Shown here piece by piece: positions 7,669-20,050 of a DNA stretch of 64,000 bases. The notes beneath the pieces are model-generated. The model was given only the letters and a program-made list of their open reading frames with translations, was not told the origin of the DNA and did not search any database. Each line of letters opens with the position of its first letter. Position 1 is the first letter of the stretch. Position numbers and translations under genes: made by a program. Location: the sequence record NC_021531.1; one strand, 5' to 3'.

Positions 7669-8325
7669 TTACAGCTCAGTTACAAACGTTGCTTTTAAAC
7701 CTTTGAGAGCGGTGTAGTCTCCGTTCTCAGCAGCAATCCGCGCAGTCTGTTTAAAGTCCGTCAGCTTTTCATGCAATGCGTTGGTGCGTGCAACGATAGC
7801 TTCATTCAACGCTTTCAATTCATCCAGCGTGAAATCGAACTTCGCGTTGTTAGCATCCACCCAGTAACCCGGGCTTTGTTCAGTGCTCAGGTAACGCTGA
7901 ATAGCTGCCAGCGCCTTTTCGTCAGTTTGGTAATTGCGCCCTTTAAACTCAAGAGGAGCAACCACCGCTTCACTGTACGCCTGATTTACCCAGCTGATTA
8001 ACTCAGTCAGTAAGCCATAGCACTTGCCGCGCGTAGAAGAACGCTCTGCCTTATGCTCGGCCAAATCAACGCCCAGCACTTCAGAGACGAACTTGTGCGC
8101 CGCTTTAATGGTGAACTTCACTTCTAACGGAGAAAGACCCTGAGTTGTCAAACCTGCGCTTAACTCTTCATCAGTCATCCCGTCCAGCAGGCGGTAGTGT
8201 GCCAGGCGCGCGAGCGTAGGGTTCCACGTCGCATCACTCAGTTCACCATCGACAAACTGTCCATGACGGTCCACCAGTTTACCGCTGTTATAGAAGCGGT
8301 CCTTTATTTCGCTATTACTAAGCAT
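7669..8325 (-). CDS. DUF4376-domain protein (tail-fibre assembly chaperone-like)
   Basis: C-half EFKGRNYQTDEKA..YWVDANNAKFDFTLDELKALNEAI matches the DUF4376 pattern. Overlaps the upstream gene by 22 nt. Confidence 0.7.
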   Translation of the reverse strand: MLSNSEIKDRFYNSGKLVDRHGQFVDGELSDATWNPTLARLAHYRLLDGMTDEELSAGLTTQGLSPLEVKFTIKAAHKFVSEVLGVDLAEHKAERSSTRGKCYGLLTELISWVNQAYSEAVVAPLEFKGRNYQTDEKALAAIQRYLSTEQSPGYWVDANNAKFDFTLDELKALNEAIVARTNALHEKLTDFKQTARIAAENGDYTALKGLKATFVTEL

Positions 8326-8867
8326 TCAGTTTTCCCCACGATGCCAATGTCTCTCAGCAGACCGTAGTCGAGGAATTGGTAGTCCCGGGCCAAGTCATAC
8401 TGCCAGACAAGATTGTTAACCTTTTTGTCGTCTGGGGTTTCAGTGGCCTCATTGAAGACACCAACCAAATCCCAGCACTCGAAATAGTTACACTGTTCCT
8501 GAGCATGACGAACAATCTTAATTTTGTTGTTCGGGAACGACTGCGCCAGAGCCACCAGAGAACCGATGCCCTTACCGTGTTTGGTACGATAAAGGATGGT
8601 CATCTTGGTCGCAGGCGTATCGAGGATACGCTGCTCCAGACCGGTGTTGCGCAGCTCAGCGTTAGCCAGTGAGTTATGGCCTTCTTCCACGCAGTCCAGC
8701 TCAACCATCACGTTCAGAGAATGACGGATCACCAGCTTCTTCACTGTTTCCGTGTAGTTCTCTGCTTTACACAGCAAAGACACGTCAAACAGTTTGTGCT
8801 TAGACAGGAACGCGTCAAGCAGCGTGGTATCAAGCCTCGTAAAATTGTGAATTAGCAATGACTTCAT
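8304..8867 (-). CDS. Hypothetical protein, probable accessory factor of the CXXX/radical-SAM cassette
   Basis: 187-aa ORF overlapping both neighbours. No recognised motif. Confidence 0.6.
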   Translation of the reverse strand: MKSLLIHNFTRLDTTLLDAFLSKHKLFDVSLLCKAENYTETVKKLVIRHSLNVMVELDCVEEGHNSLANAELRNTGLEQRILDTPATKMTILYRTKHGKGIGSLVALAQSFPNNKIKIVRHAQEQCNYFECWDLVGVFNEATETPDDKKVNNLVWQYDLARDYQFLDYGLLRDIGIVGKTECLVIAK

Positions 8868-10188
8868 TGGTCTTTTCCTGAGATTTGTGTGCGTGAGGTT
8901 GTTCGTGCGTTACTGGTTCTGCAATTGCAGGCTTGGCCAGCTTAGGCAGTTTGTTTTCCTGCGAGGCGCGAACACGGCAGTCATAGCAGTTACAGGTCAG
9001 CTCTTTGAACTGATTACCGTAAGAACCAAAACGACGTTCCCACCACTGTGCAGTTAACAGTTTAGCCGTAGTCCAACCGCACTGACGACGTTCGCCGTGA
9101 TACTGCTTACGTGCTTCTTCTTCACCGTCGCCATTTTCATACGCGGCAGCTACGCAAGATGCACAGATGTGTTTCGCTGGGCAGCCCATACAAGCGTCTG
9201 GGTAAGACTTCCACTGAGTCTTAACTTCTTCCAGCAGTTTGCCGCCGTCGGTGTTAACGATTTCACGACCAACAAGCTTAGCAATTGCCTGACGGGTGGT
9301 TACCGTAGACATGAAGCGGTTACAGCCGTAGATGTTACGGTCGAAGCCGAGACAGGTCATGTGAACGGTCGTACCGCAGTGTGGGCGCAGACGGTCTGGG
9401 TTATAACGTACCTGATCGTCGTGCAACAGTTTTTCACGCCAGTCTGGGTTCCACAGGTCATCGACGTTCATACCGTTTGGAGTGATGTGCCCCATTTCAG
9501 CAGTCGGGTCTAAGTGCAGCCCTTTACCAATCCAGTATTCCAACACTTCAATCATCTGGTTAGAAATACCCAGCGCCATGTCACGAGGAATGATATCTTC
9601 AAATACCATGTTCCCGTAGATGGTACCACCGCCCGATTGGTCGATTAACGACTTCATGGATGCAGCGTAATGCTTGAGCGTGTCGTGGGTAAAGGTCGCT
9701 TTGATACCGAGGTCGTTAATCTTCATCGACTTCAGATAGTGATACCCTTCCAGCGCTTTCTCGTACGAGCCTTTGCGCGAGGTAGTGAAGATACGGTGTT
9801 TGTCATGCGTCTCCGGCAGACCATCAATCGATACGCCGATAGAGAGACGCTTATACCAGCGCTCGATAATAGAACGGTTCAGCGGCTTATCAAACAGCGT
9901 GCCGTTGGTGGAGATAGAGAACATGTACGGGCGGTTATCCCGCGCCGCCAGCTCTTCTGCAGTTTCGAACGCTGCAATCAGCAGCTTCGGCTGCAGGAAC
10001 GGCTCACCACCGATGATATCGATGATAGCACCATCCACACCCGGCTTACCTTTATCGCGGTCAAAGCAGGCATGGATAAAGTCAACCACGTCTTCAACGC
10101 GGTTGTTACGCGGGAACTTGCGCTCGTAGCAGTAATCGCAATCGAGGTTGCAAGACAGGTTGGTAACTATTTGGTACGTTACGTCCAT
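8830..10188 (-). CDS. Radical SAM/SPASM peptide maturase (CXXX-repeat target type)
   Basis: CNLDCDYC triad, IIGGEPFL, ISTNGT, VSIDG. SPASM cysteines CGTTVHMTC..YGC and CMGC..HICASC..RQC. Extra CNCYDC near the C-terminus. Confidence 0.92.
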   Translation of the reverse strand: MDVTYQIVTNLSCNLDCDYCYERKFPRNNRVEDVVDFIHACFDRDKGKPGVDGAIIDIIGGEPFLQPKLLIAAFETAEELAARDNRPYMFSISTNGTLFDKPLNRSIIERWYKRLSIGVSIDGLPETHDKHRIFTTSRKGSYEKALEGYHYLKSMKINDLGIKATFTHDTLKHYAASMKSLIDQSGGGTIYGNMVFEDIIPRDMALGISNQMIEVLEYWIGKGLHLDPTAEMGHITPNGMNVDDLWNPDWREKLLHDDQVRYNPDRLRPHCGTTVHMTCLGFDRNIYGCNRFMSTVTTRQAIAKLVGREIVNTDGGKLLEEVKTQWKSYPDACMGCPAKHICASCVAAAYENGDGEEEARKQYHGERRQCGWTTAKLLTAQWWERRFGSYGNQFKELTCNCYDCRVRASQENKLPKLAKPAIAEPVTHEQPHAHKSQEKTNEVIANSQFYEA

Positions 10189-10198
10189 AATGGCCGCC

Positions 10199-11074
10199 TT
10201 ATGCTTGTGGCAAATTCAGGTAGTTATGCAGATACTTGTAAGCATCCACGCCGATGATAGAGGCTATTTTATTACAGCCTGAGTCCACTAACCATTCCGT
10301 GTTCTCACGCAGCCCAATATCCCCATTCGGTTCAACCATCTTCAGCTGACCACATGCGTTACAGTTCATGTTATCGAAGAACTTCTCTAAACGCAGTACC
10401 GTCGAGTAACCGTTCGCCGCGTTCATCTCAAACATCTGGGCTTCGAGCCGTTTCCATCCGTAGATGAAGTTCAGCACGTGGTCCTGATTGAGAGGTTTCG
10501 GCATTAACTTGTCGAACGTCAGCGATAACGCCGCCAAGTTAAGATGATGCAGAGAACTGTGCAGTTGAAGGATGTCTTCGTACCAGCGAGGTTTACTCAC
10601 CATCTCACGCGTCAATACGCCCCACACAGTAACCTTTTCCAGCTCATTGATTACTTCAAAAGCCTCTTGAGCACCTTCGTCAATGAATGCACGCAGGCTA
10701 CGCTCACCACCTTCGTACGCATCGATAGACACGACGATATGGTCAAACGTTTTCAAGAACTCAAGTTGCGACAACTTGAGTTTACGACCGTTGGTGAATA
10801 GCAGGTGTTTTGCGGAAGGAGCGCCACGCCGTGCTTCTTCAACGAAGTCAACCAACTTCGAATAGGAGAGCAGCGGTTCGCCACCAGTCCACAGGAATTC
10901 CTCTACCAGAGGATTTTCTTTTATAATGTCCACCATTGCCTCTTTATGTTTTGTTTTAGAGACATCGCCCTTAGCCATGTGAGCTGCCCCTCCACAGAAG
11001 GAGCAGTTTAAGTTACACTTAGCCGTTATTGCAACGTCAATCATCGTTGCGGATGATTTAGGGGTATCGTGCAT
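10199..11074 (-). CDS. Second radical SAM enzyme (short, Twitch-like C-terminus)
   Basis: CNLNCSFC triad, TGGEPLL, LFTNG, VSIDA. C-terminal CNACGQLKMVEPNGD..GC. Confidence 0.88.
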   Translation of the reverse strand: MHDTPKSSATMIDVAITAKCNLNCSFCGGAAHMAKGDVSKTKHKEAMVDIIKENPLVEEFLWTGGEPLLSYSKLVDFVEEARRGAPSAKHLLFTNGRKLKLSQLEFLKTFDHIVVSIDAYEGGERSLRAFIDEGAQEAFEVINELEKVTVWGVLTREMVSKPRWYEDILQLHSSLHHLNLAALSLTFDKLMPKPLNQDHVLNFIYGWKRLEAQMFEMNAANGYSTVLRLEKFFDNMNCNACGQLKMVEPNGDIGLRENTEWLVDSGCNKIASIIGVDAYKYLHNYLNLPQA

Positions 11075-11999
11075 CCGGATTTTTTCCCCATTGCTTGCTC
11101 ATAAACGAGAAGAGCGGGTCATCTTTACGAACATCTTCGCCGGGAACAATGAGTTTCGGGTCATTATACGCCTGCAGGATGGCGTCTAAGATTTTATTCC
11201 GGCTATTGATTCCGTTAAGTTCTTTCAAACTTACTTCACGGCGGATGAACGAGTCCATTACATGCTGCTCTTCGTCCGAAAGGAGACCGGCCTCGTTGAC
11301 TTTACCCACCAAGAAGGTCATTACTCGGTGCAAGTCAGCTGTGGTATTCGGTTGCTCCCCGTACTCGCTTTGAATCAGGTAGTTCGTCCACGGTTTGCGC
11401 AGTCGCTTGGTAATCTCGTGTGCATCCGTAATCGCTTCCCATCTCATACTACGATGGTTCCACGTAATTTTATACGAATACGCCATGAGGTCAGCCAGCG
11501 TATCGATGCCGAGTTCTTCGTAACCATCGACCGCATAGTAGCGTTCGGTATTGAAGTAATCGTCATCTGGCACTTCATCGCAGTCAACAACGGTGTAGTA
11601 GAACGGGAAGGCTGATGGGTATTCCCAGTTCCAGCCGCGTTGAATCATCGGCTTCATGTTGTTTTCTTTAAACGATGCAAACAGCAGCTCCAGCGGTGGA
11701 GCGTAGTTAAGTACCGCATCGGTAAAGTAGTATTTGTCGTTCACTAATTTACCGACGTAGTCTGTCGTCGCACCGGTACACTTGATGATTTTCACATTCA
11801 GTGTGTCAGAGATGTTGAACTCTTCCAGTACCGTTGACTTATACAGAATGTCGCGAGGACGCAGACGTGGGAACTCAACCGGGTTCATTGCCAGCAAACG
11901 CAGACGGTCATTGACGTGGTCATTAACCGCGTCAGGTAGCCCGATGTGAATCGGGTAGTTGAATGTAGTTCGGAATGCGTAATGCGCATTACTCTTCAT
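11058..11999 (-). CDS. Hypothetical protein in the radical-SAM cassette
   Basis: 313 aa, strong SD AAGGAG, overlaps the rSAM gene by 17 nt. Confidence 0.7.
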   Translation of the reverse strand: MKSNAHYAFRTTFNYPIHIGLPDAVNDHVNDRLRLLAMNPVEFPRLRPRDILYKSTVLEEFNISDTLNVKIIKCTGATTDYVGKLVNDKYYFTDAVLNYAPPLELLFASFKENNMKPMIQRGWNWEYPSAFPFYYTVVDCDEVPDDDYFNTERYYAVDGYEELGIDTLADLMAYSYKITWNHRSMRWEAITDAHEITKRLRKPWTNYLIQSEYGEQPNTTADLHRVMTFLVGKVNEAGLLSDEEQHVMDSFIRREVSLKELNGINSRNKILDAILQAYNDPKLIVPGEDVRKDDPLFSFMSKQWGKNPDARYP

Positions 12000-12010
12000 G
12001 AAAGAACTCC

Positions 12011-12220
12011 TTACGAAGGCCAGGTCACAGCTTTCGCGCCACCTGAAGACGTCCAGCTACAACTACCATTACAACGATAGCTGCCTGCTGCAATATTGTT
12101 TAAACGATTGGAGTTATTAACGGTACCGCGGGTAGCAATGTAGTTAATCGCACTAGCGGTGGTGATATAACCCTCAATCCTCGCGAGTTGCTGTCCAACC
12201 TCGTTTAATGAAACAGCCAT
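12011..12220 (-). CDS. MAVSLN-leader peptide C (short core CNGSCSW)
   Basis: 69 aa, SD GGAGG. Leader homologous to peptides A and B. Confidence 0.8.
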   Translation of the reverse strand: MAVSLNEVGQQLARIEGYITTASAINYIATRGTVNNSNRLNNIAAGSYRCNGSCSWTSSGGAKAVTWPS

Positions 12221-12232
12221 GTGACCTCCCTA

Positions 12233-12634
12233 CTACGGTCCAGAACAGCCGGAACAACCCCCAGAACATGACCCGGAACAGTTACCAGAGCATCTGCCTG
12301 AACACGTACCAGTACACGTACCAGAACACGTACCAGAACACGTGCCTGTGCAACCACCGGAACAACCACCCGCGCAACCACCTGAACAGCTCGACGAACA
12401 GCTAGAGCCACAGGTTGCACTACAGGTTCCGGTACAGCCGCCAGAACAGCCTGCGGAGCAAGTCCAGCTACACGTACCTCCGCAGTGGTAATAGTTCGCG
12501 TCATGACCTGCTAAGCGGTCTACGTTATTGGTAGTCTTGCCCGCAATGTACGATTGGACACCGGCTTCGGTTTTCAGAGCAGCGGCTTCAATGTTGTCCA
12601 GTTGGCCTTTTACAGCGTTTAATGAGACTGCCAT
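12233..12634 (-). CDS. MAVSLN-leader CXXX-repeat peptide B (putative rSAM substrate)
   Basis: 133 aa from MAVSLN (SD GAGGGG), 21 Cys in CXXX repeats, ends CSGP. Confidence 0.88.
   Translation of the reverse strand: MAVSLNAVKGQLDNIEAAALKTEAGVQSYIAGKTTNNVDRLAGHDANYYHCGGTCSWTCSAGCSGGCTGTCSATCGSSCSSSCSGGCAGGCSGGCTGTCSGTCSGTCTGTCSGRCSGNCSGSCSGGCSGCSGP
12301..12348. repeat. Four near-perfect tandem 12-bp units (AACACGTACCAG) inside peptide B
   Basis: aacacgtaccag / tacacgtaccag / aacacgtaccag / aacacgtgcctg. Confidence 0.85.
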
Positions 12635-12645
12635 GGTAATCCCCT

Positions 12646-13038
12646 CTATTGTGGCCCCGAACATCCGCCTGAGCAACTTCCTGAGCAGTTACCTGAACAC
12701 GCCCCACCACAACTCCTGCCACAAGCACCAGAACATGATGAAGAACACGCGCCGCCGCACGTACCCGTACAGCTACCTGAGCAACCTCCCGAGCAAGAAC
12801 TAGTACACGTGCCAGAACATGACCCGGAGCAGTTACCGGAGCAGCTGGAACAACCGTGGGAACAACCTGAAGAACAAGACCAACTACAACTACCGTTGCA
12901 GCGGATTTCTCCGGGGGACATCCCGCCTAAATTATTTGCGTTATACGCTTTTGTGGCCACCTGTCCATCAACCGAAGCGCCAGTTGCAATAGACAGTCTG
13001 GCCATACGCGCATTAACGTCATTGAGTGAAACGGCCAT
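12646..13038 (-). CDS. MAVSLN-leader CXXX-repeat peptide A (putative rSAM substrate)
   Basis: 130 aa, SD AAGGA, 21 Cys in CXXX repeats, ends CSGPQ. Confidence 0.88.
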   Translation of the reverse strand: MAVSLNDVNARMARLSIATGASVDGQVATKAYNANNLGGMSPGEIRCNGSCSWSCSSGCSHGCSSCSGNCSGSCSGTCTSSCSGGCSGSCTGTCGGACSSSCSGACGRSCGGACSGNCSGSCSGGCSGPQ

Positions 13039-13051
13039 ATGCTTCCTTTAA

Positions 13052-13079
13052 CGGGCGAACTTGACATAAAGTATCGCCC
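13052..13079 (-). promoter_or_regulatory. Inverted repeat enclosing a TATG late-promoter-like motif upstream of the peptide genes
   Basis: GGGCGA...TCGCCC arms around CTTTATGTCAAG (minus strand; TATG at 13068-13065). Confidence 0.4.
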
Positions 13080-13093
13080 TGACGTTATAAGAG

Positions 13094-14293
13094 TTACTTG
13101 GTGCCGGCAGCAGACTGAACGTCGCCGCGGGTAGTCAAGTTGGCGTTGACGTGTACGTTGGCTTGTACGACACCACCCGTGTTCTTGTTCAGATACTGGT
13201 CGTGCGGGTTCGCCGCCGATTTGTGGGCTGCGAGGTCAGCGTTGGTTTTCGCCAATGCCTGTTCCAAGGCCGCGATGCGATTTTCGAGACCTTGGTTCGC
13301 TGTGCCCATATCCGCAATCTGCTGCTTCAGGTTATTGGTTTCCTGATTAGCGGCTGCGAGTCCAGCACGCAGGTCATTGAGCTGCTGAGTCAGCAGACCG
13401 ACTTGCGTTTCCAGAATGAGAATCTCATCCATCAGTTCCGCAATCTGTAACTGCGTTTTCTGATAGTTCTGGTCAACCGTGTTGAGCTGGGTATTCCATG
13501 TGCCGATAGAACTGACCAGCGCTGCGATTTTCTGCGCCAAGTCGGTATCGGTCGCATTGAGCGTACCGATATCTTGCAACACGGAGTTGATGCTGCTTTG
13601 CACGTTCTGAATCAACGTACGGACTTCTGACGTGGAGTACACGTCAAGTTGGCCACGCGTCACTTTGTGAACGTTGCCTTCCGCATTACGGTGCTCATCT
13701 AACGCCGCCAGCATCTCTTGACGATACGCTTTGAGCATGTTCTGAATCTGCACCATTTCCGCAGACGCGCCCAAACGAATCGCTTCGTTGAGTTTCGCCA
13801 GCAGGGTAACGATGTATTCAAAACCAAAGAAGTCGCCCACGTCACGGAACGCAGGCGCACCTGCAAACTCATCCGGCACGTTACGGAGTTCATAGAAGTC
13901 GATAGTTGGGTCATCGAGTTCCAGTGATTCAATACACTGGACGATGTTATCGACGTTCGCTGCGTACGGACCACCGACAATGTGGGCGCTGGCGGTGATG
14001 TCGGACGGTACAGCCGAGCGAGTAACAACAATAGCAGTTGCCACTTCGCGGCCACCGGTCATTTTAGTCAATGACGGATGGAGGAGAATTACTTCGTAGT
14101 CGGTACCGCGAACGAGTGGTTTATTCGGCGCGTTCACCGGAGCTAATCGAAGCGTATCAACAAAGAAAGGACCTGTTGGGAATGCAAACGCCCGGTTAAT
14201 CGTTCCTGTGCCGAGTTTAATCGGGTGAGAAACGTTGTTACCGAGGATGGTTCCGAACAGGTCCAACGGGTACTGCATTACTGCCTTACTCAT
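13094..14293 (-). CDS. Virion/tail-fibre-associated protein with coiled-coil C-half
   Basis: 399 aa. N-domain homologous to the N-termini of the three giant fibres (LVRGTDYEVI). Heptad repeats. H..NPH motifs. Confidence 0.7.
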   Translation of the reverse strand: MSKAVMQYPLDLFGTILGNNVSHPIKLGTGTINRAFAFPTGPFFVDTLRLAPVNAPNKPLVRGTDYEVILLHPSLTKMTGGREVATAIVVTRSAVPSDITASAHIVGGPYAANVDNIVQCIESLELDDPTIDFYELRNVPDEFAGAPAFRDVGDFFGFEYIVTLLAKLNEAIRLGASAEMVQIQNMLKAYRQEMLAALDEHRNAEGNVHKVTRGQLDVYSTSEVRTLIQNVQSSINSVLQDIGTLNATDTDLAQKIAALVSSIGTWNTQLNTVDQNYQKTQLQIAELMDEILILETQVGLLTQQLNDLRAGLAAANQETNNLKQQIADMGTANQGLENRIAALEQALAKTNADLAAHKSAANPHDQYLNKNTGGVVQANVHVNANLTTRGDVQSAAGTK

Positions 14294-14317
14294 CGGAAAA
14301 CTCCTTGTGGTGAGTAA

Positions 14318-14345
14318 AGAGTGGGGAGCCGAAACTCCCCACTTT
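14318..14345 (-). terminator. Hairpin / weak terminator between the giant fibre and the 399-aa gene
   Basis: GTGGGGAG/CTCCCCAC stem with a short T-rich tail. Confidence 0.55.
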
Positions 14346-14347
14346 GT

Positions 14348-17300
14348 TTACGCGCTCAGGGTGGAATCATGAATCATAACATCAAGGACAACCGCGGTAG
14401 TCGCATCGTAGTAGATGTCGATATACCGGCCTCCTGCGAAGCTACGTTCCTCCGTCCAGAACATCACTGGGGCTTTGGTAATGGCTGCAGACTGACGCAG
14501 GGCCAGCATGTAGTCTTTACCCGTAGGCACGGTCAACGTGTACAGGCCGATAGCAGCACTGCCCGGAATAGAAGCAGGGGAAGCCGGGTTGGGTAACTTA
14601 ATCGCACCTAATGACGTACTTGAGGTAGCGAGTTTCGTTGTCCCATCCTGCACTAATTCAAACGCCACATACGTCGGTGAATTACCTGGATTTTCTCTTA
14701 CGACAAGCGCCAACGAGTTGGCTTGATTCAGCAACGCCCCGGTCAGTGTAACCGTTTGCGTAGCTGATGCGTTGTACGTAGTAGTCCCCTGCAACACACC
14801 GTTCAGGTATACACTACAACCGTCGTCGCTATTCACATTCAACATTAAAGAGTTGCTTGTTGGTGTGAAAGTTGTTTTTACAGCGAACACCTCGCCCGCT
14901 GCCAACAACTGAGCATATGGGCGAATCGCTGGCGATGCTAACGGACTGCTATACGCGTTGGTCGTCTGCATTGCAGGTGGCCACAGCTTTTCAGCATTGT
15001 TAGCTAGCAACATCCACGACGCGGTTATCGCAGGCAGGCTCACACGAGTGATGTTATCGAAGTTACCGGCGAGCTGGTTCGCTGTTTCCAGCGCCGCAGC
15101 AGTGCCGTAAGTCTTCGACAAATCCGCCCCCGGACGGGTGATGTTCCAGAATCGTGCCGCGTTTTGAGATGTAGCCCCGTAGCCAAAACGACAAGTGCGG
15201 GCAAATGTCGGGGCTGCAGTGGCCAAGTCAATCTCAACGTATTTGTACGTTGCAGAGTTACGCACCTGGCTCATCGACAACGTTTTCTTCGCCGCCACGA
15301 TTTGTCGGATGTTCGTGTCACGATCACCGGTTGTTGGCAATTGTGCATGTTCAACCGCAATATACAGCATGTTACCGCGCCGTTCAGCGTAGACATGCGC
15401 ATACCACTTATTCCACCCCAGTAAATCGGTGGTCGAAGTGTCTAAGGTGGCGATCGCCCGAGAAGATGACTGTCGGTAGTTTTCCTTAACCTGTATCCGA
15501 GACTGTAAATCAAGGTGCCCCTCGATTGAGTTACCGATAGCTAAGCAAAGCGTTTGTTCGCGCCCTACCGACGAATCTTCCTTCTTCAACGCAGCCAGCA
15601 CAATCGCGATGGCATCATTATCAGTGTCGTTAGAAGTGATAACCGTGTTAAACGTGTAATCACCAACCAGTTCATCCGAAATAAACCCAACGAACGTCAC
15701 TGTGTTCAACGTACATTCAACCACATCATCCGCGTCGATATATTTCCATGCTACGAGTTCAGACTCGTTTGCAGGCTGGGCCGACGTCGAGTTGTTGTGA
15801 CTGAAACGGTACCAGCTGTTGTAGATATCCTGGAACGACGGGAATGAGAACGTGTCGATGGTACCCATGTTCTCCATGTTCGAGTAGATAGACTCGGTCA
15901 AGGTCCCGCCTGCCAGATATCCGTGCGCGTACGGGTTGTCCGCGTGCGCCAACAGAGAACCAACTCGACCCAAACGTTTCACACGGTTGATGTTGACTTC
16001 AACGATAGCGTTAGTCGACGTCACCACGTACCCGATATAGAGGCGCGTAGCAGTGTCGCTAAGCAACGTTTTGGAAACGCTGTACTCTGCCTTACCTTGT
16101 GCGTTTAACTGCACGTAGAAGTACAGTGTGGCGTTCTGGTAGTCGCTTGGGAACAACGCTTTGAAGTCAAATTGCGAGGCTGGCGTATTGTGCTCTTCCA
16201 TGTTCGCAAAGAACGGAATGTCCTGCGTAATGTAAAGAATCATCCCCTCGGCCAGCTGTGGTCCGAACAGGATCACGTTACGTGCACTGCCAGTGTTGTA
16301 ATTACGACTGTTGTTGCTAAATGCTTGACCGCCGTAATACATCCCACCAGACAAGAACGTACCAACCAGAATCTCGTTCGTTTCAGGCAGATGGACAACG
16401 TCGCTTTCGCCATAGGACGGGTTAACCATTTCTCGGTTAAACGTCCAGTTTGCCATGTTCGCATCGCATGTCAACGTGAAGGTCATGTGACCCCCGCCAC
16501 CGACAGTCGCACAATGACATTGCGCATGAGGACGGATAATCCATCCGTCACTGCGTTTAATTAAACGCAGCTGCCAGTAATCCCCTGCATTGCTGATACC
16601 CGTCCACGCGAAATCGATACGGTCTTCGTTACCAATGTGCACCGCGTTGCTGTAATCCAGCGCCAGTACGTTGTTAACGAAGGTCATTGGGATGCGGAAA
16701 TAGTAGACGTACGCATACGTGACACCGTCCGCTTCTTTCTGACCAAACATCGCCGTAGCGATACACATGTTTGTACCGCCCAAATCAAACAGGTTTAACC
16801 AGCTTGTTTTGAAGATACTCGCCGCTTGTCCCCACTTCGCCACACGGGTCGTCAGCATCGACTGGAAATCATTCCACATCGCAGCATTAACAGTCACTGT
16901 GTCGTTGTGCAGCACTGCAGAACCGTTAATGTTTTTGTAATTACTGCTCCCAGCGGAGTTAAAAGCGGCCCCGTTGAGGTAATTACTGTTGCCGTTGAAG
17001 ATGTAGGCACAGCGGGTTAACACGTTGTACGTTGACTCGTTAAACGCGGTACGGTCATTCGAAGGACCCCAACCACCATAGCCCGGGAAGTTGTAAGAGC
17101 CTGCGGTGTCGTAAGCTATCTGGGCGCAATCGCTGGTACCCAGACGGCGCATCAGCACCTTTTTAACCGTGTTACCCAGCTGCACTAAACCACGCATGCG
17201 ATGTTGGTACACTGAGCCGTACGCCCCGTTTACTGCCATCTGGACACCCATCCGCCCGGTCAGCGGATTATCCCAACGCAGCGCATCGTACAACGACTTG

Positions 17301-20050
17301 CCGTTAAGACTGATACGCACACACTGGTTGTCACTGTTACTGTTGTCGTTACCGATACAGTCAATGTAACCAGCGCGGGGTGCGGTGGAGATGATCATAT
17401 TCCCGTAGAGGAAACCGTCAGAGTTGTCGGTGTGGTAATTCCCACCATTATCGGTGACACCGTTCTCGTCGAGTTTCATCGGCAGGTAATCGTTATCCAG
17501 TACCGCAGTCTTCGCATCGAGGTCGATAACGAAAGAAATCTGCCAGCGGGTACCGAAAGCAGTTGCGGAGTTCGAAACGTGTGTACTACAGTTTCCACGC
17601 ACACGAATCTTACGACCATTACGTCCAAGCATCCAGTTGCGACGTGCAGAGTGCACCACGTTGCGCGCACCTGTCCACTTCGCAGCACCCGCATCGGTGA
17701 TGTAGTAGAGGCTGGTCGTGGCCGGGTCTTTCGTATTCAGCGCATAGGTCGCAAAACGACCCACGTTACCATCGGCGTGTTTACCGGTCAGTTTGACAGA
17801 CTGGAACTGTACGTCTGTCTTACTGAGATCGTCTTTGCTGATAGACCACAGGCACGTAAAGAACTCCGTGTTGGTCAACGTGCTCTTAATGACATAGATG
17901 TCGTTATCGATAACCATCAGATAATCATCACTCGGTGTCGGAGCGAAGTTATACTGATTGGTTGCCCGAGGGGTCGGGGAATATGTCACACGAACGATGT
18001 CGGTATGCTTCGCAGCATCCGCACTACCGTTAAACATCACCAGATAGTAACGGTCGTCTGTGCCTAAGAAGATAGCACAGTCGTCGCCACAAACCACCAC
18101 GCGTTTAAGCTCAATACCCGGATACTTCTTCGCCATCCCCGCAGGAACGTACTGTACTGCTGTGGCCACATAATTCGAGGATAGGTTATTGGAACCCGCT
18201 TCGAACTCACGGTACCAATAGAACACGCGCTGCGAATCAGCATAACCGTCCCAACCGTTACGCAGAATGTAGAGACGGTTGTCTTGTTCAATCTGCATCG
18301 CGTTAAAGTTAGCATCGATCACAGACGCTGTCCCTTCATACTGCCCCATTGTTGGGATAGGCAGGAACCCGGAATCACCGTAGTAGGTGCTGTTCGCCAC
18401 CCAGCTCGGTAGCAGGTTCAGTGCTTTGTCTTCCGCAGCATCGATATCCAGTTTTAACTGGTAACCGAGTTTGGAGACCGCCGCTTTATTAGTCGTGGCA
18501 TCCAGCACCGTATACAGATACGTTAAGCCGGAAACCGTCGGCGAGGCAGTGGGTACGTTTTGCAAATCACTGGCAGTATGCGTGTGAACCTTCAGCGCTT
18601 TGTTGGTCAGCGCATCACGGAACGGCTGATGTACAGGCTTATCGGCGGGGGCGGTGTTGTTGACTTTATCCAGACCGAAAGACGCTGCGGTCAAGTTAAT
18701 CGTCTGCGTTGCACCGAAAGACGCTCCGTTGATTTTGAACGTCTCATCAACGTAGTTATTCAGTTTCAGCAACAGGTTGTTCACCCCTTTCTGCGAGAGC
18801 GCATAATTCGGAGCAATAACCTCAACACTGTCCGTCAGACGGAACAGGCCCTCAGTCGTCAGGGTCGCTGCCGGAGGGTTAGCCGTCATGTTTAACGGAG
18901 AGGCCTGTGAACCGTTACCACCCATACGCACCGTGTCAGTCGACTTAAAGGTCGGCTGCGCGTTGGAGTTCAGAGGGGCATACAAGTACAACCCTACTGA
19001 GTCAGGAGTAATCAAGAACGCACCGTTATAAATCGGACGGACGTCTTTGGCACCGGTTGCATTACCTTTGGACGGAACGAACAGCTCATCGTAACCCGCA
19101 CGTGAGGAAACCCCAATACCGCGCTGGTTATTATCGCTGTCAGCAGCCAGTTCAATCACCGCTTCTGTTCCGGTCAGGAGAATCTTACCCGCACTAAAGC
19201 GCAGGGCGGATTTCCCGTCTTGGGTCGCGTACACCACTTCGTCATTGTTAATCGCTTTGAAACGACCGAACACCTGACCCATGGTGTCATCAATCAACGT
19301 ATCGACGATACGCTGAGAGATTTTATTCTCGACCATAATCGCTACTAACTGCGCCAGCGTCTTACTGAACGCTTTGATGGCATTCGTAGCAGCATCACCT
19401 ACACCTAACGCCCCAATTTGGGCAGGGGTGTATTTGTGCTGATGTGGCGTTTTGTGGTGCTGTAACAGTTTGTCTGCATACAGTTTGTTCGCTGCGCGAG
19501 AGAGCGCCTTAATAGCCGTATCGATTTCAGTATCAAGCTGGCCGGCTTTCTCTTCGAGCTTTAAACGGATGTTGTTGATGGCTGCCGCAACCTCATCACG
19601 CGCAATGGCCTCGTCGATATTCGTCGGCGGGTCAATAGGCTCGATGGGAATTTGGTAGCGCATCAATGCTGACCAATCGATGTTGCGTGGTTCGGTCAGG
19701 TCGGGGTTAACGAGGAACTTGCCGATATCCGATTCAGGAACGGAATAAGACGAGCCGAGCACCTGCAGCTTATAGGTAATCTCGGTTTTCGTCAGCAGCA
19801 TTATCCCGCCGAAAAGCTGGGCATTCGCGGCGTGTGCACCGGCAGAGTAATACAACGCGAGGTAATAGTCGATACCTTCAAATAACAGATTCCCCGCCGT
19901 ATCTTTAATCTCTAATCCGTTACGAAAGAAGGGTGCCTCGAAAGGCACCACTAAGTTGAAACGGTTAGGATAAGTCGACGTACTGAGGGAACCTTCCGCG
20001 ATGTTATCGGGGCTTGTACCCGTCAAATCTTCGGGATAATGTTTTCTCAT
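14348..20050 (-). CDS. Giant tail-fibre-like virion protein (1900 aa)
   Basis: Fibre-type motifs HHKTPHQH, GLDKVNNT..DKPV, HTH, AT.T..G...L. Beta-rich distal domains, including SDDGCSVYLNG (jelly-roll/carbohydrate-binding type). Confidence 0.75.
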   Translation of the reverse strand: MRKHYPEDLTGTSPDNIAEGSLSTSTYPNRFNLVVPFEAPFFRNGLEIKDTAGNLLFEGIDYYLALYYSAGAHAANAQLFGGIMLLTKTEITYKLQVLGSSYSVPESDIGKFLVNPDLTEPRNIDWSALMRYQIPIEPIDPPTNIDEAIARDEVAAAINNIRLKLEEKAGQLDTEIDTAIKALSRAANKLYADKLLQHHKTPHQHKYTPAQIGALGVGDAATNAIKAFSKTLAQLVAIMVENKISQRIVDTLIDDTMGQVFGRFKAINNDEVVYATQDGKSALRFSAGKILLTGTEAVIELAADSDNNQRGIGVSSRAGYDELFVPSKGNATGAKDVRPIYNGAFLITPDSVGLYLYAPLNSNAQPTFKSTDTVRMGGNGSQASPLNMTANPPAATLTTEGLFRLTDSVEVIAPNYALSQKGVNNLLLKLNNYVDETFKINGASFGATQTINLTAASFGLDKVNNTAPADKPVHQPFRDALTNKALKVHTHTASDLQNVPTASPTVSGLTYLYTVLDATTNKAAVSKLGYQLKLDIDAAEDKALNLLPSWVANSTYYGDSGFLPIPTMGQYEGTASVIDANFNAMQIEQDNRLYILRNGWDGYADSQRVFYWYREFEAGSNNLSSNYVATAVQYVPAGMAKKYPGIELKRVVVCGDDCAIFLGTDDRYYLVMFNGSADAAKHTDIVRVTYSPTPRATNQYNFAPTPSDDYLMVIDNDIYVIKSTLTNTEFFTCLWSISKDDLSKTDVQFQSVKLTGKHADGNVGRFATYALNTKDPATTSLYYITDAGAAKWTGARNVVHSARRNWMLGRNGRKIRVRGNCSTHVSNSATAFGTRWQISFVIDLDAKTAVLDNDYLPMKLDENGVTDNGGNYHTDNSDGFLYGNMIISTAPRAGYIDCIGNDNSNSDNQCVRISLNGKSLYDALRWDNPLTGRMGVQMAVNGAYGSVYQHRMRGLVQLGNTVKKVLMRRLGTSDCAQIAYDTAGSYNFPGYGGWGPSNDRTAFNESTYNVLTRCAYIFNGNSNYLNGAAFNSAGSSNYKNINGSAVLHNDTVTVNAAMWNDFQSMLTTRVAKWGQAASIFKTSWLNLFDLGGTNMCIATAMFGQKEADGVTYAYVYYFRIPMTFVNNVLALDYSNAVHIGNEDRIDFAWTGISNAGDYWQLRLIKRSDGWIIRPHAQCHCATVGGGGHMTFTLTCDANMANWTFNREMVNPSYGESDVVHLPETNEILVGTFLSGGMYYGGQAFSNNSRNYNTGSARNVILFGPQLAEGMILYITQDIPFFANMEEHNTPASQFDFKALFPSDYQNATLYFYVQLNAQGKAEYSVSKTLLSDTATRLYIGYVVTSTNAIVEVNINRVKRLGRVGSLLAHADNPYAHGYLAGGTLTESIYSNMENMGTIDTFSFPSFQDIYNSWYRFSHNNSTSAQPANESELVAWKYIDADDVVECTLNTVTFVGFISDELVGDYTFNTVITSNDTDNDAIAIVLAALKKEDSSVGREQTLCLAIGNSIEGHLDLQSRIQVKENYRQSSSRAIATLDTSTTDLLGWNKWYAHVYAERRGNMLYIAVEHAQLPTTGDRDTNIRQIVAAKKTLSMSQVRNSATYKYVEIDLATAAPTFARTCRFGYGATSQNAARFWNITRPGADLSKTYGTAAALETANQLAGNFDNITRVSLPAITASWMLLANNAEKLWPPAMQTTNAYSSPLASPAIRPYAQLLAAGEVFAVKTTFTPTSNSLMLNVNSDDGCSVYLNGVLQGTTTYNASATQTVTLTGALLNQANSLALVVRENPGNSPTYVAFELVQDGTTKLATSSTSLGAIKLPNPASPASIPGSAAIGLYTLTVPTGKDYMLALRQSAAITKAPVMFWTEERSFAGGRYIDIYYDATTAVVLDVMIHDSTLSA

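Follow-up and report, generated by a model that had tools for sequence, protein, structure and literature searches.

Cysteine-ladder proteins beside radical-SAM genes in the tail operon of Cronobacter phage CR5: candidate cross-linked tail-fibril proteins

What are three small genes, two of them laden with cysteine codons, doing among the tail genes of a jumbo phage, upstream of two radical S-adenosylmethionine (radical-SAM) enzymes? The question arises from a 64,000-nucleotide stretch of sequence record NC_021531.1 (hereafter the window), which derives from Cronobacter phage CR5, a 224-kb jumbo phage of the genus Derbicusvirus and a relative of Salmonella phage SPN3US; over bases 8800-14400 the window matches CR5 at 100% identity. 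On the minus strand of the window, two adjacent genes (here pepA and pepB) encode proteins in which a Cys recurs at almost every fourth residue, and a third (pepC) is their short paralog. Our answer, in which we place about even confidence as a composite, is that pepA, pepB and pepC encode tail-fibril proteins cross-linked by radical-SAM chemistry rather than a secreted peptide.

Both longer proteins open with a short N-terminal domain (helical and ~46 amino acids (aa) long in pepA, ~50 aa in pepB), followed by a (CXXX)n tract of 21 Cys that ends in CSGPQ in pepA and in CSGCSGP in pepB. Successive Cys are four residues apart in 19 of the 20 intervals of either tract, the spacings running 4,4,4,4,3 and then fifteen 4s in pepA, and nineteen 4s and then one 3 in pepB. 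Minus-strand translation bears out the preliminary description of this locus on each of these particulars: 21 Cys, 19 CXXX spacings and a single CXX slip per protein, the slip standing after Cys5 in pepA (CSSC) and after Cys20 in pepB (CSGC), a CSGP at the end of both tracts, and intervening residues drawn nearly all from Ser, Gly, Thr, Ala and Asn. Each core also holds one Trp and one Arg, with one His in pepA, and Cys makes up ~25% of it (21 of 84-85 residues). The pepA pattern is not due to chance, as none of 200,000 shuffles of its core held every Cys spacing at 3-4. At the DNA level the repeat has diverged, as had also been noted, with a mutual identity of only 60-76% between its period-12 units. 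One 36-nt patch stands above this range, window 12261-12296 (the pepB tail, CSGN-CSGS-CSG) being 92% identical to window 12812-12847 (pepA units 6-8), and may be the trace of an old exchange at non-equivalent positions.

The third paralog, pepC, fell outside the region first described. It has only 2 Cys in CR5 (4-5 in other genera), it shares with pepA and pepB both the N-terminal domain and a CxGSCSW start (CNGSCSW in pepC), its product matches pepA and pepB by BLASTP (E 3e-13 and 9e-12, respectively), and its position is kept wherever it was looked for among relatives. We take all three to be real genes because a Shine-Dalgarno-like sequence lies 5-8 nt before each ATG (AAGGA, GAGGGG and GGGAGG) and because all related phages examined keep each of them, with synonymous changes in large number. 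The database annotation does have a gene on the opposite strand, which speaks for viewing the periodic Cys as a side effect of repetitive DNA or of the antisense open reading frame (ORF) CR5_157, i.e., for there being no gene here at all. We consider this next to inconceivable given that more than 30 loci keep the frame, the start codon, the Shine-Dalgarno sequence and the Cys register, that different codons are used at half or more of the conserved residues, that pepA and pepB match both the TIGR04114 and phrog_6085 families, and that the DNA repeat units are as dissimilar as given above.

In the GenBank and RefSeq records of CR5, CR5_157 (window 12591-12803, plus strand) is placed over the pepA/pepB junction and pepA and pepB are omitted. 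Antisense or wrong-frame calls of a similar kind occur in phages Phobos, Caitlin, Asesino and pSal-SNUABM-04 and in metagenome locus L128, and CXXX genes are systematically overlooked or called on the wrong strand. A word-indexed search with the pepB N-terminal domain in a protein database of 5.8 billion clusters returned one relative only, because such ORFs are rarely called.

With regard to family, both pepA and pepB score above the curated 20-bit cutoff of TIGR04114, the NCBIfam model for CXXX-repeat ('Cys-rich repeat') radical-SAM targets, and two radical-SAM genes lie downstream, which supports the view that the two are radical-SAM target peptides. There was no TIGR04114 match for pepC and no Pfam match for pepA, pepB, pepC or the 313-aa protein encoded next to them; PF27846, a model of the same family as TIGR04114, is precomputed on the CXXX gene of loci L035 and L036. 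The two enzyme genes, rSAM2 and rSAM1, are found 0.9-1.8 kb downstream of the CXXX genes on the same strand, an arrangement kept in all loci examined.

The larger enzyme, rSAM1, has as its invariant Cys in 12 diverse homologs C13, C17 and C20 (CX3CX2C) together with those at positions 271, 289, 333, 336, 342, 345 and 370, i.e., a radical-SAM motif plus seven Cys in a SPASM-like pattern. The middle block of the latter reads CX2CX5CX2C (the canonical SPASM block is CX2CX5CX3C). Its matches are to the ranthipeptide synthase PapB (NF047865, 117.6 bits vs. a cutoff of 340), the CXXX-repeat maturase TIGR04115 (112.9 bits vs. a cutoff of 350), TIGR03906 (58.9 bits), anaerobic sulfatase maturase (50.7 bits; PDB 4k36-4k39) and RumMC (44.7 bits vs. 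a cutoff of 720), and the best sequence match in the PDB is 5wgg/5why, which we take to be CteB. On this evidence rSAM1 is probably a thioether-forming SPASM enzyme. Beyond the last SPASM Cys it carries a variable C-terminal extension of ~80 residues (window 8830-9075, residues 371-452), whose end motif, NEV..(D/N)SQFY(E/S)A, is present in two of three aligned SPN3US-like homologs, degenerate in the third and absent from more distant ones. The smaller enzyme, rSAM2, combines a CX3CX2C at residues 20-27 with a C-terminal CX2C...C, and its best NCBIfam matches (PapB, 49.6 bits, and HxsC) are far under the cutoffs. The RefSeq start of this gene (CR5_154, window 10978) lies downstream of the CX3CX2C motif, which is kept by the 291-aa ORF or by a start at Met11, as annotated in EarlPhillipIV.

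Scanning the rSAM1 alignment against one genome per prokaryotic species placed this pairing in a wider context. Of the 11 best bacterial loci, 10 have a gene for a protein with a CXXX run, the proteins ranging from 52-aa peptides with 7 Cys up to ~660-aa proteins with 112-122 Cys in Margulisbacteria. These largest ones, from Candidatus Termititenax / Margulisiibacteriota (loci L044, L045 and L046), are largely in CXXX register, and the radical-SAM enzyme adjacent to that of L044 scores 275 bits on TIGR04115, under its cutoff. True TIGR04115 members (383-513 bits) make up four of the six bacterial enzymes scanned, and in three (L047, L050 and L053) TIGR04119, the second CXXX maturase domain of the bacterial system, is fused to the radical-SAM domain; the phage rSAM1 homologs reach 110-154 bits on TIGR04115. 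The phage system is thus a divergent branch of the bioinformatically defined CXXX-repeat family, because its targets pass TIGR04114, rSAM1 is sub-cutoff, and the nearest bacterial enzymes are true TIGR04115 members. This family was reportedly defined in a paper by Haft and Basu. The peptide-enzyme pairing is already known and curated, as several NCBIfam models, if uncharacterized: we found no paper on the chemistry or function of the bacterial family and none linking CXXX repeats, radical-SAM enzymes and phage fibers. None of the papers found describes its location in a tail operon, a partner protein specific to phages, an A/B/C triplet, a constant number of Cys or the co-variation of pepA and pepB.

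The phage-specific partner is the 313-aa protein, encoded directly after the CXXX genes in CR5 and present in every CXXX locus examined (homologs are in L034, L035, L037, L039-L042 and L128). Its family is small, with just 86 clusters among 1.84 billion representatives. AlphaFold2 models it with confidence (predicted local distance difference test (pLDDT) 84.7, predicted template modeling score 0.82), and a Foldseek search of the model against PDB and BFVD returned its own ortholog alone, with no assignment as protease, chaperone or recognition element for peptides made on the ribosome and modified after translation (RiPPs). Wherever the context is sufficient, namely in the 24 SPN3US-like loci plus L034, L035/36, L037, L039/40, L042, L123, L125/126 and L128, the module consists of one or more CXXX proteins, a partner resembling phrog_8030 and two or more radical-SAM genes. 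Three radical-SAM genes occur in L034 and four can be seen in both L039 and L040; two metagenomic relatives, L028 and L029 (4380-5300), have an extra 307-aa rSAM2-like gene between pepA and pepB.

How constant is the number of Cys? We extracted the peptides from 14 sequenced phages of five genera (Derbicusvirus, Wellingtonvirus, Machinavirus, Erskinevirus and Seoulvirus) and from IMG/VR contigs. In the crown group, i.e., the SPN3US-like loci, pepA has 21 Cys in 24 of 24 loci across the five genera, and this constancy represents deep conservation, because the neighboring 313-aa protein is just ~43% identical between genera. Among these 24 loci there are 18 distinct cores, which show 7 spacing patterns, contain between one and six 3-residue spacings and span 75-80 residues. 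Since the Cys count is fixed while the span varies, it is the number of units that is conserved, not the length. In pepB the count is 21 in Derbicusvirus, 23 in Wellingtonvirus, and 20 plus one slot where Cys has become Ala (e.g., CSGS-ASGT) in the other three genera. Further away it departs from 21 in pepA as well, with 19 Cys in pepA and 21 in pepB of L125/L126, 16 and 19 in L123, and 31 in pepA against 33 and 35 in pepB of L039/L040; single-copy relatives in other phages have 8-13. Thus 21 Cys is a clade-level constant, and a universal "21" is ruled out by L039/L040, L123 and L125/L126. The earlier suggestion that core length is under selection holds in part: the number of Cys is constrained, as those 24 pepA loci attest, but length itself is not fixed and 21 is not a general value.

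The preliminary description had also expected pepA and pepB to vary together, and they do. Their spans are correlated (Spearman 0.93 over 15 lineages, 0.90 over 11 crown lineages), in an analysis that ignores phylogeny and rests on perhaps 3-5 independent co-changes, and pepB is longer than pepA by 0-2 residues in 12 of the 15 lineages. The remaining three (Wellingtonvirus-like, L123 and L040) show an excess of 9-10 residues, so that the difference looks as if it were quantized. Over their last ~22 residues, pepA and pepB resemble each other more closely when they come from one genome (0.70) than when they come from different genomes (0.55), in a comparison that again ignores phylogeny, and none of 20,000 label shuffles reached the value of 0.70. 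Recent gene conversion is ruled out as the source of this likeness: identical tail residues are written with different codons at 13 of 20 positions in CR5 and at 16, 20 and 17 of 23 positions in EarlPhillipIV, Phobos and L031, respectively (65-87%), which equals or exceeds the codon difference among identical residues of the CR5 and EarlPhillipIV orthologs (53%), two phages whose tails differ in both genes. The codon pattern instead points to parallel change under selection or to an old conversion event.

The idea that slips at opposite ends of the two tracts set their register is not supported. A slip after Cys5 (C[ST]S-C) is found in every pepA, including the distant L039, L040, L123 and L125, and is an ancient landmark. 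The terminal slip of pepB, however, is peculiar to CR5, with pepB of the other genera slipping at unit 3 and at variable C-terminal positions, so that the placing of slips at 'opposite ends' is no conserved part of the design. As a consequence of the pepA slip, units 4-6 (residues 59-66, window 12841-12867) read CX3CX2C (CSHGCSSC), formally the spacing of a radical-SAM cluster-binding site. This is again kept in every pepA found, distant clades included, and may be a metal site, a recognition element or a coincidence.

To what kind of protein does the Cys tract belong? Distant phages, reached via rSAM1 homologs, provide an indication. In L034 a 13-Cys CXXX tract forms the C-terminus of a 258-aa protein with repeats of the form HxH...Y(Y/F)TE.E(I/V)N..L, which has a weak, below-cutoff match to the Pfam 'phage tail repeat' and matches phrog_6085, the family of pepA, pepB and pepC. 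The junction in this protein (ASKLAGQTSGYYRCSGCSWTC) aligns with pepB (VDRLAGHDANYYHCGGTCSWTC), and the homology of the CR5 proteins to fiber proteins is limited to phrog_6085 and a 75-residue BLASTP match to this L034 protein (pairwise E 5e-10). The L042 tract is the end of a 275-aa protein of coiled-coil type, and a baseplate wedge gene lies upstream of its gene at a distance of two genes; the CXXX proteins of L035/L036 and L037 are encoded near DUF4376 genes, in L035 also adjoining a 2257-aa fiber; and elsewhere the CXXX module is beside a GpJ-like tail protein. In every one of these distant cases the tract is followed by a homolog of the 313-aa protein and by two or more radical-SAM genes. 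Within the window, the N-terminal domains of pepA, pepB and pepC have no similarity to the 399-aa or 1900-aa proteins encoded upstream or to any other ORF of at least 100 aa. Between the fusion protein of L042 and the 399-aa protein there is no homology, only a common coiled-coil character, and a tblastn search of the L034 fiber-like N-terminus against phage records gave one irrelevant match.

Because the tract ends fiber-like proteins in L034 and L042, the N-terminus of pepA, pepB and pepC looks fiber-like and not like a disposable leader. Its ~50 residues resemble the remnant of a fiber shaft or an oligomerization domain rather than a RiPP leader. The two genes had initially been called precursor paralogs; the paralogy is real, and precursor status is doubtful given the resemblance of the N-terminal part to a fiber domain in the L034 alignment.

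The genomic setting is likewise that of a tail. The genes follow one another on a single strand in the order 1900-aa protein, 399-aa protein, pepA, pepB, pepC, 313-aa protein, rSAM2, rSAM1, 187-aa protein, DUF4376 and DUF1353 (Table 1), so that the CXXX module is bracketed by the 1900-aa tail protein and a virion protein on one side and by DUF4376/DUF1353 'tail assembly chaperone' genes on the other. DUF4376 genes adjoin the CXXX gene in the unrelated phages of L035, L036, L037 and L041 as well. The 399-aa protein, directly upstream of pepA in the same orientation, carries the annotation 'virion structural protein' in both CR5 and its relatives, and has a coiled coil of ~190 residues with a HKSAANPHDQYL motif at its C-terminus. 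The counterpart of the 1900-aa protein in SPN3US, gp168, belongs to the tail and resembles phiKZ gp131, which lies at the baseplate periphery; a CR5 match to it is listed at 31% identity (PMC5105663). Among the called genes and family matches of CR5 and related clusters there were no protease, exporter/transporter or immunity genes, and a promoter and terminator scan of the locus yielded background level only.

Table 1. Genes of the CXXX module of phage CR5 and their neighbors (window coordinates)
Feature	Coordinates	Strand	Family match or context
1900-aa fiber/baseplate-periphery protein	14348..20050	-	synteny with SPN3US_0168 (gp168 position)
399-aa coiled-coil virion structural protein	13094..14293	-	phrog_2163 'virion structural protein', E 6e-100
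pepA, 130 aa	12646..13038	-	TIGR04114 31.5 bits; phrog_6085
pepB, 133 aa	12233..12634	-	TIGR04114 33.7 bits; phrog_6085
pepC, 69 aa	12011..12220	-	phrog_6085, E 1.6e-23
313-aa partner protein	11058..11999	-	phrog_8030
rSAM2, 291-aa radical-SAM enzyme	10199..11074	-	Pfam PF04055, 46 bits
rSAM1, 452-aa radical-SAM/SPASM-type peptide maturase (predicted)	8830..10188	-	PF04055; sub-cutoff PapB and TIGR04115
187-aa conserved protein	8304..8867	-	phrog_7988; overlaps rSAM1 3' end; syntenic in all relatives
218-aa DUF4376 protein	7669..8325	-	PF14301, 45.8 bits

How, then, might such a module work? We propose that pepA, pepB and pepC are small structural proteins of the tail-fiber/baseplate module, whose short helical N-terminal domain, probably homologous to a fiber-like shaft, would be retained in the mature protein. 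Late in infection, in a reducing cytoplasm where disulfides cannot form, rSAM1 probably turns the Cys thiols into thioether (S-C) cross-links, with rSAM2 and the 313-aa partner probably assisting. The acceptors would be neighboring Ser, Thr, Gly, Asn or Ala, within or between chains, and the product a covalently stapled rod, resistant to proteases and redox change and with a set number of rungs, which would form part of small tail fibrils on the virion. Because their lengths are matched and their tails co-vary, pepA and pepB are probably co-assembled, lying side by side in one assembly, with pepC as a short third chain that shares the N-terminal domain. In this proposal the genes with their periodicity and conservation, the association of radical-SAM enzymes with CXXX tracts, the tail setting and the fusions are observed; the thioethers and their acceptors, the kept N-terminal domain, the place in the virion and the co-assembly of pepA and pepB are inferred. 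The fixed 21 Cys of pepA, the correlated spans and the co-varying tails are the kind of constraint expected of a structural element. It is tempting to go one step further, on distinctly more tentative ground, and to imagine a radical-SAM-built virion part, made by thioether synthases of RiPP type in jumbo phages, of laddered rods in which pepA and pepB pair chain to chain, pepC adds a short third strand and the fixed rungs serve as a length ruler for an element of the tail fiber; there would then be 21 rungs in the SPN3US-like crown group, and pepA of another clade would have 31.

Several results weigh against cross-linked tail-fibril proteins. rSAM1 falls under the membership cutoffs of both TIGR04115 and PapB, and none of the seven CR5 proteins scanned matches TIGR04119 at E up to 0.1. 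The phage core is devoid of Asp and Glu, the acceptors of PapB and QhpD, which makes the acceptor, and even the type of reaction, tentative. Three lineages depart from the close match of pepA and pepB spans, and independent co-changes behind the A/B correlations are few. AlphaFold2 run on pepB (from a 29-sequence alignment) gave a pLDDT of 47 with two N-terminal helices only, and is uninformative on a polyproline II or solenoid fold because the Cys tract was left unmodeled. Finally, the SPN3US proteome papers that could be searched never mention gp163-gp167; this absence is weak evidence either way, because the ORFs are mostly unannotated and contain few Lys/Arg.

The same observations could be accommodated in other ways, of which a classical RiPP is the most familiar: the first ~46-50 aa would be a leader that directs the radical-SAM enzymes and is then cleaved, and the cross-linked core would be released at lysis as a diffusible bacteriocin, signal or anti-defense peptide. 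A leader-like region, a repetitive core and an adjacent radical-SAM/SPASM gene are the architecture of ranthipeptide and sactipeptide clusters, the neighbors of bacterial TIGR04115 enzymes include peptides of 52-88 aa resembling ordinary precursors, and the 313-aa partner could be a recognition protein. Yet no protease or transporter gene was found in any cluster, the genes are co-directional inside a tail operon, the would-be leader aligns with a fiber repeat, the tract is the C-terminus of the 258-aa (L034) and 275-aa (L042) fiber-like or coiled-coil proteins, and three paralogs occur in fixed order with matched lengths, all of which make a released peptide unlikely in our view. The tail context would equally suit an assembly factor, i.e., a modified Cys-ladder protein acting inside the cell as scaffold, ruler or chaperone for large fiber proteins and missing from the mature particle. 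The nearby DUF4376, DUF1353 and 'tail assembly chaperone' genes fit such a role, as do a fixed unit number and matched A/B lengths, the marks of a ruler; we find it rather improbable, as the fusions to fiber-like proteins suggest a permanent part of the fiber and covalent stapling would be costly for a transient one.

Two further explanations concern the chemistry. The preliminary description had named a metal or Fe-S chain as an alternative, in which free Cys thiols would ligate metal or clusters (e.g., as Cys layers in a trimer) and the radical-SAM enzymes would act otherwise or at few positions. This we judge improbable, and somewhat more so than an assembly factor, despite the ~25% Cys of the core, the CX3CX2C shared by all pepA at units 4-6 and the HxH repeats upstream of the tract in the L034 relative: in bacteria and phages alike, CXXX-repeat proteins co-occur with a dedicated radical-SAM/SPASM maturase, enzymes of the PapB, CteB and QhpD families, which are related, use up Cys thiols for thioethers, and a strict i,i+4 Cys spacing with Gly and Ser in between is, to our knowledge, no known metal-site pattern. 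The radical-SAM enzymes might instead install something other than a cross-link (formylglycine from Cys or Ser, as made by the anaerobic sulfatase-maturating enzyme (anSME), epimerization or methylation), giving a reactive or protease-proof tract. The sulfatase maturase match of rSAM1, a weak match of rSAM2 to the epimerase YydG, a Ser or Thr at position +1 in 77% of four-residue and 98% of three-residue units, and the presence of at least two radical-SAM genes per cluster, which permits several chemistries, all lean that way. The scores, though, are well under those for PapB and TIGR04115, and the anSME target motif (C/S-x-P/A-x-R) is absent from the cores, so that we see little prospect of this being the answer.

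If pepA and pepB are indeed stapled and on the virion, phages would have borrowed RiPP enzymes for covalent cross-links in a reducing cytoplasm. No structural protein of a virus would have been stapled by radical-SAM chemistry before this one, which would at last provide a function for the orphan bacterial CXXX-repeat family; as the peptide-enzyme pairing is known solely from bioinformatics in bacteria, a role in a virus particle would be new. It would also explain why structural regions of other giant phages contain clusters of as many as eight radical-SAM genes, such as the eight in the structural cluster of the Aeromonas giant phage 332-Vera, which were called 'highly unusual' (PMC12390700) in the one related remark that we found, and would offer protein engineering a naturally evolved thioether ladder of defined length. 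The setting is tractable, since SPN3US amber mutants and virion proteomes exist and the phenotypes would be tail-fiber structure, adsorption and particle stability.

Among named systems, the bacterial TIGR04114/TIGR04117-TIGR04115-TIGR04119 system is like that of the phages in having a Cys at every fourth residue, a low-complexity tract and an adjacent radical-SAM/SPASM gene. The bacterial system has the TIGR04119 domain, whereas the phages have a second, stand-alone radical-SAM enzyme and the 313-aa partner; bacterial CXXX cores are rich in Asp/Glu and phage cores lack both; and the phage version adds a fiber-type N-terminal domain, the A/B/C triplet and the setting in a tail operon. A looser likeness, which we mention as a lead, is to the needle of T4 gp37, a thin fiber domain with a periodic ligand-type residue: HxH repeats bind iron in the T4 gp37 fiber tip, and HxH repeats occur upstream of the tract in L034. 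The residue is His in gp37 but Cys in the phage tract, and only the latter comes with radical-SAM enzymes.

Sactipeptides (AlbA, ThnB and RumMC; S-C-alpha) share Cys donors and a radical-SAM/SPASM maturase with the phage system, and since they accept almost any residue, including Gly, Ala, Ser and Thr, their chemistry would fit a core free of Asp and Glu. Their family matches to the phage enzymes are weak, however, and they are hairpins with Cys clustered at one end rather than periodic ladders. Ranthipeptides, too, have a radical-SAM/SPASM enzyme acting on repeated, regularly spaced Cys motifs, and PapB is the top NCBIfam match of rSAM1. Their enzymes form thioethers from Cys to Asp (PapB), Thr (CteB) or Asn (the NxxC enzyme; PMC11002830), as S-C-beta Cys-Asp in the six CX3D motifs of freyrasin, S-C-gamma Cys-Thr in thermocellin (SCIFF) and S-C-beta Cys-Asn in the NxxC product. 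The PapB core has 6 Cys against 21 in the phage proteins, and the phage clusters are without RiPP-style protease or exporter and lie in a structural context. Asp and Glu are both absent from 36 distinct phage cores (~3000 residues), and hence so is the Cys-X3-Asp/Glu motif used by PapB; because of this a PapB-type acceptor is excluded, and Ser, Thr, Asn, Gly or Ala would have to serve. For the fate of the product, a model is the small subunit of quinohemoprotein amine dehydrogenase, QhpC, in which QhpD forms intra-protein thioethers without cleavage of a leader (PMC11002830). The similarity to the phage proteins is distant, TIGR03906 being the rSAM1 match concerned, and QhpC, which belongs to an enzyme and not to a virion, has few cross-links, with Asp and Glu as acceptors, but the QhpD/QhpC pair sets a precedent of a SPASM enzyme that staples a protein which then stays in its assembly.

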